Part shown: positions 3,236 through 7,125 of the stretch, piece by piece
How the letters are laid out: the number at the start of each line of letters is the position of its first letter
Numbering within the stretch: position 1 is the stretch's first letter
Assembly: GCF_964204645.1 (NCBI RefSeq)
Contig: NC_134036.1
Coordinates: 2,604,001 to 2,668,000 of the forward strand
DNA: 64,000 bases
From: Tubulanus polymorphus
Taxonomy: Eukaryota; Animalia; Nemertea
Direction: 5' to 3'
Notes under the pieces: generated by a model
What the model was told of the DNA's origin: nothing
Seen by the model: only the letters and a program-made list of their open reading frames with translations
Databases searched by the model: none
Made by a program: the position numbers and the translations under genes

Positions 3236-3639
3236 GTGAGTACGACAATTTTAAAGCCTTGAAAAAAATGTTCCGTTAAGAAAATGCGATACTACAGTAG
3301 ACTCCGTATAACAGAGTTCTATTTGGACCATAGTTTTTTTTAAAGAGTTAACCGAGTACCGACTTGGAGGTCGGGGAATTTTGTAGGATTTAGATTTCAT
3401 CTAACTTTAGAATATACGACAATTCACAGGAATAAATTAACTTCCGCAAGGAATTTCATCGCTTTGGGACAAGATTTTCAACGTTATTCATCGAGATTTC
3501 AAACATCCGCAAAGATTTTTATTACATCTTTTCTCATCGTAAAAAAACCATCCATTTCAACTCTATGCAAAACTATCGCCAACTATTTTCGTAAAAATGT
3601 CCGGATGCAAACTGGACAAAACCATTCCTCCTAACAGGA

Positions 3640-3732
3640 CAAAAACTGTCAATGTAAACAGGGCAACAACTGTCAATGTAAACAGGGCAACAACTGTCAA
3701 TGTAAACAGGGCAAAAACTCAATGTAAACAGG
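3640..3732. repeat. 24-bp tandem repeat (~4 copies)
   Basis: AACTGTCAATGTAAACAGGGCAAC units. Confidence 0.85.
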
Positions 3733-3851
3733 AAGACAATGTCCATACGAATAGGGAAAATATTGTCCATGAAACTGGTCTGAAAACTGTCCACTAATAT
3801 CGATGGTATTGTAATTCGAACCAACTTTGATAATTCATCGAATATTTTCAG

Positions 3852-4619
3852 ATGCAGATGAAGATGTTACTGGCGGCAGTAGGAATAATAGTGATAGTCG
3901 CGTTATTCAGCGTCGAGGGGGTGAACGCCAAATATGGAAAAGACACAATGCCTTTGAGAATCACAATCAAAGATCCAGAAAAAACTGTAGCCAGTGAGTA
4001 TGACGTCATAGGGGGATCAATACACCATCTTTATGAGAATTATCTAAACTATCGCATCAATTTGACAATGTCATACTGCGATTTTATGAAGGTAGTAATT
4101 TTGATGAATTACCACAACAATTCGATGACGTCATAGGAGGATTAGTAGAGGCAGCCATCTTGTCAATGATATCATAGGAGGTTTTATGAATACTGTGTCA
4201 ATTTTATGATGATGATTGGGGAATTAAAGGAGGCAGCCATCTATTCTGCAGGCTTATTTGATGATGTCAAAGGGGGATTTTTCGATGTCATAGAGGGCAG
4301 CCATTTTCTCTGAAAGTTTCCGAGCGAAACTAGTTAAAATTCCCTCAGAGACGGGTTATCACCGATATTGTTGACCGGTTTCCACGCATTCAAGAAATAA
4401 GTCTTCGTTTTGTGTATTTTTAGATGAAAATGAGAAAAGAGATTTGAACAGCGAGCAAGGTTTGTAGATAGCCAATATTGCTTATTCCAGTTAACAACAA
4501 AAAGCTTACATTTTCGTAAAATAAAAAATGAACATATTTTTCTTCTTTTGTCAGTGAAACGATCGGCGAGACCCGACTGGAATTGTTATATGTTTAACTG
4601 CGTCGACACCGGGCGATGA
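3852..4619 (+). CDS. Secreted prepro-peptide (neuropeptide or toxin-like), 80 aa; exons 3852-3993, 4424-4459, 4555-4619
   Basis: Two canonical GT-AG phase-1 introns give MQMKMLLAAVGIIVIVALFSVEGVNAKYGKDTMPLRITIKDPEKTVANENEKRDLNSEQVKRSARPDWNCYMFNCVDTGR*. This has a signal peptide, two KR sites, two Cys and a C-terminal Gly-Arg. AATAAA at 4715-4720. Confidence 0.8.
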
Positions 4620-5070
4620 AACGCGTTACACGTAGGTGGCGCTTCGGTCTTCTACTACCATGACGACGATGAATTATCAGTAGAAAAATCTTGTACATAT
4701 AATAGTGATGCTTGAATAAAGAAAACAAAAACAGCTAGCTAGCTACCGGTAGCTAAAACGAATGTTCGTTTCAATGTTGAATTATTTTCAGGGTTTTCTT
4801 TAACCCAAAATTGTAAGTTATCAACAGATGTTCTAGTTCGGACAAAGGAGCGACGGTTGAAAGGCTGATGTCTTAAATCTCTAAACAGAAGTTTTTTCAA
4901 CGATCTTTTCAATATTTCGAAACAAAAATCTTCACAAAAAAAAAACGTTTCTTAAACCAAAACTTGGCCGAAATCAAACAAAATGAACCAGAGAAATTAA
5001 AAACGAAATAAAAAAATTTTTTGTTAGAATTTTAAATTTTTTTCACACTCACATTTTAAACGATTTTTTT

Positions 5071-6582
5071 TCACAATTCGTCGCGATTGTCCTGCATCGG
5101 TTCCTGTCGATCAGATGTGGCTCCCTCTGGTGGCGGCCAGCCGCTGTCCGATGACGACATATATTTCTCTTGTACGTTGGCGATTTTCTCGTATTGGAAT
5201 TCCGCGCCGACCGCGCACGACAACAACTTGTGAACGTCGCGTTCGTCTGCATCGCTCGCGAACACGTAGCCATTCGCCGTGTCGATCTGTTGCGTTACGC
5301 GCAGAACGCTTTGTTTATCTTGAACGTCCAACGGGACGAACGTCACCAGGCTGTAGTCCTCGACGACGCCTAACAATCGTTCGTTGAGTTTTTTGAATTT
5401 TTTGAAAAATGGATGATCCTGAAAGGAAACAAATGAAAATGAGTTGGTATTTGATCAGAATACGGAGAAAGTGAGAGGGTAAATAAATATAAAATCCCAC
5501 ATTTTTGAAAGAATAAAAAGTTTATTTGGATTGTACCGACTGTACCAAAAAGTAGAAATTGAGTATTTCTCAAAATTGAAGGAGCTTCTGATATTTTGCT
5601 CAAACAAAAGGAGTTTCAAACACCTTTTTAAGAGTATTTTCCTTTTAGAAAGAGATTTAAGGAATCAAGGAGTCATATGGACCTCGTGAATCTAAAAATA
5701 TGACCGCTAAGAATTTAACAGGATAATTTGAGCTTTTTCTGTGGAACTGGATCAAGAATAGTTTCTCTGATTACAGGATTCGATCTAAGGAATAAAGGCC
5801 ACTTGCCAGTGCACATCCGAAATTTCGCTTACCCCCTCAAAAAATCAACTTGCCCTACAGAGACACCTGACATGTGTTAATGATACCCTAATCGCCCTAA
5901 CAAAAATAAACATGTCCCGGGCAATCGTCAAGTGCTTAGATCCTGTGATAATGTGAATCATACTTACGTTTAGATGATCTAGAATGTACGACAGGTCGAG
6001 AACATCGGTGAAATAATCGAGATTATACGACAAACGACCTCCGCGTTCGATTAAATCGGCTTTAGAAAGAACGTTCACTTGCGGCAACGATATCTGCAAC
6101 ATCGTCGATAGCGACGTCAACAATACTGATATAAACTTCGACGGATCGTTACAATAATGCGAGTCGACCAGGTGAACGGCGACCAGTCGATAGTCGCAGT
6201 CGTCGACCAGCGATTCGAACACGCGTTTAACTGATCGGTGATGCGTGTATAGCTCCACCTGTCCGGGGCAGTCGAACAGAACGTATCGTCCTGGAAACGC
6301 GGAAAGTTTCGATTTTAACCACGCGAGGTTCTGTTCGAGGTATTCCATGCAGTAGATTAACGCTCCATTCGGACCGAGATGCATCGCGTCCATAACGTCA
6401 GAGAGCGAGACGAGTTCGGAAAGGTCGACCGAACTGGCGTACGGTACTGAGTCGTTAGCAGGGTCGAGGTTAACGACGATCGCGTCGCGTCCTAGGTGGC
6501 GCAGGAATTCACAGACGGCCGCGCAGTACGTCGTTTTACCGGAACCAGGCGGACCGATTACAACTTGTCCGAACTGAGCCAT
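5071..6582 (-). CDS. GPN2: GPN-loop GTPase 2, 320 aa; coding exons 6582-5968 and 5418-5071
   Basis: Motifs [17 protein letters not shown] (P-loop), VNLDPAN, LGPNG (GPN loop), [28 protein letters not shown] and IDTANGYVF, characteristic of the GPN2 subfamily. One phase-0 GTAAGT...TTTCAG intron. Confidence 0.93.
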
Positions 6583-7125
6583 CGTCGCCCGGTACTGATT
6601 GATACAACTCACTGAAAATGAAGCAGAAAAAAAACAAAACATCAATATCAACAGATTATAAATTACATTTACAAGTCACAACAAATTACATTCAAATAAC
6701 GTTCTAAATCAAGCCTAAATGGACATTGTTTTCTTGTTTGCATCTAAATTGTGTTTCGAATTACATTTCACTTATAAATTACTCTATAAACCGAATAATG
6801 GTAAAAAAATGGAGTATAAACTTCCTTGGCCTCCAAGCCTAGCCCTAGAGTAGAGGTCTAGCTTAGCCTACCCACCCGCTATCTAAATGTACCAAACTCA
6901 GTAAAATACTTCAAAGAAACATACATTTCAGAAATAGTAGAATTGCTTTGACTAATGGTCTGAGAGAGTGTAATAGGGCAGCGAGGGTCAGGGAAAGCGG
7001 AACGACACGCACGCGGGTTGGGGTGAATTTTGACGGGTTTTATCAGCTGTAGCGCTCTATTCAGAAGGTGTCACGCGCTTCCATACATTAAATGTTATAA
7101 CTAACTTTCTTTTAATTACACTTAC

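Follow-up and report, generated by a model that had tools for sequence, protein, structure and literature searches.

The question raised by this locus is whether a short stretch of DNA in the nemertean Tubulanus polymorphus hides a gene for a secreted peptide. The stretch is located at 3852-4619 on the plus strand of the 64,000-nt part of contig NC_134036.1 that was analysed (positions 2,604,001 to 2,668,000), referred to as the window in the following. A preliminary description had proposed a hidden three-exon gene for a cyclic, amidated peptide at this site. Judged from the sequence, T. polymorphus very probably possesses a small, unannotated single-copy gene for a secreted, ring-shaped and amidated peptide of 16 residues, SARPDWNCYMFNCVDT, whose expression we infer.

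A three-exon gene model with the layout of a prohormone

Re-reading of the sequence and translation of the exons results in three coding exons at 3852-3993, 4424-4459 and 4555-4619 (plus strand). Together they encode an 81-residue precursor with a signal peptide, the C-terminal end of which reads KR-SARPDWNCYMFNCVDT-GR-stop. The exon translations are, in order, MQMKMLLAAVGIIVIVALFSVEGVNAKYGKDTMPLRITIKDPEKTVA, ENEKRDLNSEQ and KRSARPDWNCYMFNCVDTGR, the last one followed by the stop codon. Both introns are GT-AG introns of phase 1, and the split codons at the junctions, read by hand, are A/AT for Asn and G/TG for Val. All coordinates of the proposed model were exact in the re-read sequence. As had been pointed out as well, the list of open reading frames (ORFs) holds only an intron read-through at the gene, namely a 94-aa ORF at 3852..4136 which continues into intron 1. 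This ORF is meaningless, because a dispersed repeat occupies ~4000-4320 in intron 1.

The coding part of exon 1 (3852..3993, plus strand) comprises the start codon, the signal peptide and the start of the propeptide, with a phase-1 end before GTGAGT. Its ATG is the first one after in-frame stops, which sit 5-6 codons upstream. Directly 5’ of the ATG there is an acceptor-like AG (aatattttcAG; 3850..3851, plus strand), which suggests a possible upstream non-coding exon; the layout is alike in a paralogue on another contig, C6 (catgtttAG/ATGCAAAT), which is described below. The signal peptide MQMKMLLAAVGIIVIVALFSVEGVNA (26 aa; 3852..3929, plus strand) was predicted by a heuristic test of the n-, h- and c-regions and is expected to be cut after VNA. 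The residues at -3 and -1 are V and A, and the boundary NA/xYGKD is equally placed in the paralogue, so that the cleavage site VNA/KY of the preliminary description has its equivalent in LNA/EY there. It is followed by the pro-region motif KYGKDTMPLRITIKDP (3930..3977, plus strand), which is conserved in comparison with the C6 paralogue and has the family form YGKDxxPxRxTxxDP.

Intron 1 (3994..4423, plus strand) is 430 nt long, phase 1, and carries the repeat mentioned above, which is satellite-like. Exon 2 (4424..4459, plus strand) comprises 36 nt from phase 1 to phase 1, encodes N-ENEKRDLNSEQ and adds the first Lys-Arg (KR) site. The acceptor gtgtatttttAG has a strong pyrimidine tract; the donor AAG/GTTTGT is weaker. 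The exon is symmetric and hence optional, as skipping keeps the frame (…TVA-M-KR-SARP…) and leaves the final peptide unchanged. Intron 2 (4460..4554, plus strand; GT-AG, phase 1) is short (95 nt) with 26% G+C. The coding part of exon 3 (4555..4619, plus strand; acceptor tcttcttttgtcAG) has 51% G+C and reads V-KR-SARPDWNCYMFNCVDT-G-R-stop. Within it, the predicted mature 16-mer occupies 4563..4610 (plus strand), with a six-residue ring between Cys8 and Cys13. Gly-Arg at 4611..4616 (plus strand) would provide the amide donor (Gly) and a residue for carboxypeptidase trimming (Arg). A candidate poly(A) signal, AATAAA, is found at 4715..4720 (plus strand), 96 nt 3’ of the stop, where the preliminary description had placed it at ~95 nt. 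AATAAA is frequent locally (11 in 3.8 kb), and the candidate is therefore weak by itself.

Signal peptide, KR sites and the amidation signal Gly-Arg-stop together represent the generic layout of a precursor of the regulated pathway, and the proposed spacer between the two KR sites is likewise read in the exon translations. Based on general prohormone biochemistry, the following processing is predicted. Two or three coding exons, probably with one more non-coding 5’ exon, would be transcribed and spliced into a message for a prepropeptide of ~81 aa, which would be routed into the regulated secretory pathway. The signal peptide would be removed after VNA and a prohormone convertase would cut after KR, at two sites if exon 2 is included. 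Carboxypeptidase would then take off the terminal Arg, peptidylglycine alpha-amidating monooxygenase would convert Thr-Gly to Thr-NH2, and the two cysteines would close the six-residue ring to yield SARPDWNCYMFNCVDT-NH2. With amide and one disulfide the computed monoisotopic mass of the 16-mer is 1917.7596 Da ([M+2H]2+ 959.887); opening the disulfide by reduction would add 2.016 Da.

The arrangement is hardly expected by chance

The frequency of such elements was evaluated in the window and in simulated sequence. Signal-peptide-like loci were defined as ATG ORFs with a basic n-region, an uncharged hydrophobic core and small residues at -3 and -1. Both strands of the window contain two of them, one being the peptide gene, and a single piece of the form KR-peptide-G[KR]-stop with two cysteines, which is the peptide gene again. 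Moreover, between 3994 and 5840 there are four phase-1 acceptors followed by an open frame of at least 8 codons and preceded by a decent pyrimidine tract, the best two of which belong to exons 2 and 3.

For the simulation, 31 Mb were generated from the third-order Markov composition of the window. Among the 65 signal-peptide-like loci obtained, none has a GTRAGT donor. Two-Cys terminal pieces arose 53 times; a good acceptor is present in two of these, neither of which has AATAAA in addition. Not one complete model came out of the simulation. Taken as upper bounds, these counts mean that complete models with compatible phases and within 2 kb are expected at most ~0.002 times per 268-Mb genome. 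As the criteria were fixed after the model had been seen and simulated Markov sequence differs from real DNA, this figure is rough, but the margin is still large.

An old paralogue of the leader exon precedes four ShK domains

A DNA search found all three exons to be unique in the 268-Mb genome, exon 3 matching itself only. Compared with its own genome, exon 1 yields one further match, on contig C6 (L018:3091-3211; genome-wide E 0.035). In the pairwise comparison 18/42 residues are identical (38 bits). The match extends past the signal peptide into the region after the cleavage site (NA/KYGKDTMPLRITIKDP vs NA/EYGKDFYPMRVTLNDP). In both leaders the ATG follows right behind an acceptor-like (t)tAG, and each leader stops in phase 1 in front of GTRAGT, a few codons past Asp-Pro.

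In the pro-region, compared over 19 codons, the proportion of differences is 0.29 at non-synonymous (pN) and 0.68 at synonymous sites (pS). The synonymous differences are saturated, with Arg kept as AGA in one copy and as CGT in the other. Because pS is saturated while pN is low, the leader has been kept under purifying selection at the protein level, and the duplication is old. Hence the gene model is backed by its splice signals, by the chance controls and by a constrained paralogous leader exon of the same phase.

The C6 gene (L018:3091-4590, i.e. G000:C6:11099091-11100590) is compact and consists of five exons, the leader and four phase-1 exons, each of the latter encoding one Pfam ShK domain (PF01549) above the curated cut-off. 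The protein ends with ...CGICASTKE-stop, has no dibasic sites and is a candidate secreted or toxin-like protein. Both genes have in common a homologous signal peptide, the pro-region NA/xYGKDxxPxRxTxxDP, the phase-1 end and the ATG after an acceptor. In contrast, everything after the leader differs, and the peptide gene lacks the six-cysteine ShK domain. No Pfam domain is present in its exons, and when a hidden Markov model (HMM) of the four C6 domains was run against the six frames of the window, neither an ShK domain nor a remnant of one was recovered at the gene.

Two further correspondences were considered and discarded. Exon 3 as a decayed ShK domain, based on a ‘YMF..C’ likeness, gives no HMM signal, and the C6 mini-exon ‘DLNN’ as a counterpart of exon 2 is not frame-compatible.

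The precursor resembles allatostatin-C precursors but belongs to no named family

About 1,300 precursors have been catalogued from 13 nemerteans, including T. polymorphus, and from brachiopods and phoronids (Thiel et al. 2021, PMC8557429). Neither the peptide nor the leader motifs occur in any of the 27 supplementary files of that study (PMC8557429), and the ring motif is found in none of 8.4 million full texts. A profile of the leader, searched against 1.84 billion representatives, recovered one spurious repeat protein (P0001) only. The comparisons with published allatostatin-C (AstC), AstC2 and vasotocin sequences given in the following were made by eye.

The closest resemblance in overall build is seen with nemertean AstC and AstC2. 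Their precursors are equally small (87-97 aa vs 81; PMC8557429) and share with the peptide gene a signal peptide, a short propeptide, a dibasic site and a Gly-basic amidation signal, with a single disulfide-ringed peptide of 14-18 residues at the C-terminal end. Tubulanus, with …EKR-QSASSHHVPCFMNLAACY-GRKRR…, and Lineus, with …KKR-DYVRDCFFHAVSCY-GRK-stop, are examples (PMC8557429). Nemertean AstC2 ends with CYGRK-stop; amidation of the Lineus peptide was confirmed by mass spectrometry, and no AstC2 turned up in the transcriptome of Tubulanus (PMC8557429). An Asn in the ring, here at position 5, is common to AstC and the new peptide. Of the palaeonemertean AstC sequences compared (Cephalothrix CMFNIVAC, also CFMNLAAC), only M-F-N is shared with the new ring.

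Other features are different. According to Koch et al. 2022 (PMC9048919), the AstC loop of protostomes always consists of six residues, and spiralian AstC genes are interrupted once, by a phase-0 intron in the pro-region. The new peptide has four residues (Y-M-F-N) between its cysteines and its gene has two phase-1 introns. The tail is VDT-NH2 in place of Tyr/Phe-NH2, and the propeptide has no visible similarity to AstC propeptides. Moreover, T. polymorphus already possesses a canonical AstC. Judged by these features, the peptide gene has the build of nemertean AstC precursors without being demonstrably an AstC gene.

The SSRP-like peptides, urotensin II and consomatins (PMC9048919) are similar in having a C-terminal peptide, a small three-exon precursor and a phase-1 intron before the last exon, and a Cys-x4-Cys ring as in the new peptide occurs in urotensin II and consomatins. 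The defining Trp-Lys motif is missing here, the loop being Y-M-F-N. In contrast to the SSRP-like group, the first intron is of phase 1 rather than phase 0, and the processing site KR is encoded in the last exon instead of exon 2. The whole mature peptide is also encoded in exon 3. The SSRP-like/urotensin group is reported to be absent from nemerteans (PMC9048919). The gene is also unlike CCAP. Spiralian CCAP precursors carry several copies of a Cys-x5-Cys peptide with PFCN...GC, in nemerteans three copies of PFCNGYYGCGN-amide, whereas the new peptide is a single-copy Cys-x4-Cys peptide. Together with the defining features of vasopressin/oxytocin (VP/OT) peptides, which are lacking as well (see below), this agrees with the preliminary description, in which the peptide was not recognised as a named neuropeptide family.

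What the gene most likely encodes

The best reading of the locus is an orphan prepropeptide gene that encodes either a neuropeptide or a gland or toxin peptide. As the best explanation, we consider a real gene whose product most likely serves as a signal in the nervous or endocrine system, through a G protein-coupled receptor. This assignment, in which cell type and receptor are putative, is tentative and held at somewhat less than even confidence. In favour of a neuropeptide one can cite the resemblance in build to AstC precursors, the spacer that separates two KR sites and the fact that the gene exists in a single copy. Of the interpretation given in the preliminary description, the gene model, the prohormone layout, the cleavage site and the lack of a named family were retained; the splice joints were not found.

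Several observations weigh against a signalling peptide or against expression of the gene altogether. To the four-residue loop and the phase-1 introns, which set the gene apart from AstC, comes the leader itself. Being common to a gene with ShK domains, it points to the secretion of gland products or toxins at least as much as to neurons. No orthologue was found in the databases and literature searched. Among 5.8 billion protein clusters, queried with exon 1 and with the read-through ORF, there are no proteins of 26-164 aa sharing words with exon 1. As a positive control, the proteins annotated by NCBI in the T. polymorphus genome are contained in this collection. Because the peptide gene is absent while the proteins of its genome are present, it was not called as coding by the NCBI pipeline.

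Transcript data point in the same direction. No sequencing run recorded as RNA holds the locus. Junction reads had been named as a check of the model, but the contigs of three runs (X1-X3) contain none of the splice joints 3993/4424, 4459/4555 and 3993/4555. X1 is plainly genomic, as it shows even depth and one unspliced 1,052-base contig across 3705-4754. In X2 and X3, which may be Hi-C or RNA runs, the contigs cover introns as well as exons. A single run of 2015, possibly RNA, gives nothing at the locus.

The weight of the last result depends on the animals that were sequenced. The vasotocin-1 gene (L002:~1043; G000:C2:27.609 Mb) encodes CFVRNCPPG-GKR in the genome, whereas CFVTNCPPG has been published for T. 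polymorphus from its transcriptome. This difference hints that the genome and the older transcriptome were obtained from different populations or cryptic species. Since the old transcriptome may represent a divergent population, less weight falls on the empty result of the 2015 run and on the absence of the peptide from published lists.

The strongest competitor assumes the same gene and the same processing but an exocrine product, i.e. a toxin, defence or mucus peptide from gland cells of the proboscis or epidermis. The conserved leader would then be a targeting or pro-region common to a small secretory family that includes the 4xShK protein. We regard this as somewhat less likely than a signalling peptide. 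In toxin gene superfamilies, a conserved leader is usually followed by a mature part that is not related, and here the leader is homologous to that of a gene with four Pfam ShK domains. The ring, in addition, is similar to those of vasotocin-type peptides, which would be conceivable for a receptor mimic. Known nemertean peptide toxins, on the other hand, are larger and have several disulfides. The gene is single-copy without tandem expansion, and a spacer between two KR sites together with a Gly-Arg end is most typical of neuropeptide precursors. ShK-domain proteins, for their part, have been named repeatedly as putative toxins of nemerteans (PMC10674772; PMC4986456), which again fits an exocrine role.

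A silent or decaying duplicate would make no peptide at all. Its leader would be left over from a gene of the ShK family, and the exons that follow would never have been in use or would have fallen out of use. The missing annotation, the lack of a spliced contig in the runs examined, the lack of an orthologue and the repeat inserted in intron 1 would all be consistent with such a relic. Yet frame, ATG, signal peptide, acceptors, donors, KR sites, Gly-Arg-stop and AATAAA are all intact, and residues of the pro-region were kept despite the old duplication (pS 0.68). The gene is not simply a truncated copy either, since no ShK remnant is present in the window, and a terminal exon of this kind beside the leader is very improbable by chance. 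A silent or decaying duplicate is considered improbable.

Descent from, or mimicry of, the VP/OT family with loss of neurophysin is suggested by the ring CYMFNC. By eye against the published alignment, it agrees with VP/OT in the Cys1-Cys6 spacing, Tyr2 and Asn5, and the stretch that starts with Cys1 and ends at the Gly-derived C-terminal amide is nine residues long, as in VP/OT. CYMFNC is also close to the rings CYLWNC and CFIWNC of phoronid paralogue 2. Beyond ring, length and amide, the similarity ends. The peptide consists of the last 16 residues after a propeptide of ~37 residues and is not adjacent to the signal peptide, it has an N-terminal extension of 7 residues, and the tail Val-Asp-Thr-amide is without Pro7 or Gly9. 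No neurophysin (PF00184) follows downstream, as the stop comes after Gly-Arg. The only two PF00184 matches of the genome are located on contig C2, as expected for two canonical VP/OT paralogues (PMC8557429), and the leader is homologous to the ShK gene, not to the vasotocin gene. A derived member or mimic of the VP/OT family is very unlikely.

Finally, a fortuitous arrangement of ORF fragments in non-coding DNA is close to refuted: it is true that a reader selected the model by inspecting unprocessed letters in a whole-genome scan, and AATAAA and GT/AG are frequent in the A+T-rich DNA here, but neither the very small number of complete models expected per genome nor a paralogous leader exon with matching boundaries is accounted for in this way.

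Returning to the preferred explanation, a real gene for a signalling peptide, its origin may be sought in the leader. The leader exon, with signal and pro-region, of an ancestral secretory gene with ShK domains would have been joined to a new peptide-coding last exon. It is conceivable, though we would not expect it, that the peptide was born in palaeonemerteans by such exon shuffling of a phase-1 ShK-gene leader and a new phase-1 last exon, the ring converging on the chemistry of vasotocin and AstC.

Repeats, variants and neighbouring genes

The peptide gene, on contig C12, stands alone in a gap of 4.3 kb, tail to tail with GPN2. The ORF at 5845-6651 on the minus strand (PF03029) is 100% identical to ‘GPN-loop GTPase 2-like [Tubulanus polymorphus]’ of NCBI; this gene consists mostly of one exon and is convergent with the peptide gene. 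A large gene of the VPS13 family with many small exons and fragments of PF25036 and PF12624 extends over ~20000-56000 (minus strand). Upstream of the peptide gene there is an open frame of 911 aa (33-1571, continuing upstream to L005:5836) with 53% G+C and no Pfam match, which is preceded by a dual-specificity-phosphatase-like fragment (L005:5348-5833). An adjacent receptor gene was considered and discarded, as the ORF ending at 1571 has no seven-transmembrane or other Pfam match.

The repeat of intron 1 (~4000-4320) yields 53 matches in the genome, mostly on contig C10 and all at query positions 149-469. Units like GATGACGTCATAGGGGGA occur at ~50 places, mostly in C10 arrays, with 67-90% identity, and the depth of the DNA runs is raised over the repeat. 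It is a satellite or an element resembling miniature inverted-repeat transposable elements, inserted in the intron.

A 24-bp tandem repeat is located at 3633-3732 (4.2 copies, 93% matches), 120-220 nt 5’ of the ATG. Each unit carries TGTAAACA, a forkhead-type core. The depth of the DNA runs is raised ~6-fold over the array, which shows that the genome contains many copies of the unit. A regulatory array is one possible reading, a plain repeat the other.

Between individuals, a synonymous difference was found at 3911 and a Val-to-Gly exchange in the propeptide at 3988. Three further differences are located in intron 2, three in the 3’ untranslated region and none in exon 2 or exon 3; with three runs the variants are too few for a test of selection. 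The contigs of X2 and X3 break at 3953-3956 and 4549-4560 with 11-29 unmatched letters, and these are not canonical splice joints. They are probably small variants of that individual, possibly affecting Leu35 of the precursor, which is Met in the paralogue.

Implications

If expressed, the gene would add an orphan cyclic amidated peptide to the signalling or toxin repertoire of nemerteans, one that was missed by homology-based neuropeptidomics and by the NCBI genome annotation. The prediction is directly testable by one mass, two or three junctions and one probe. A leader common to the peptide precursor and to an ShK gene bears on the origin of new ligands and on the traffic of genes between nervous system and venom. 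Should exon shuffling be true, the locus would represent a datable case of a neuropeptide, or of a receptor-mimicking toxin, arising from a toxin-like gene family.

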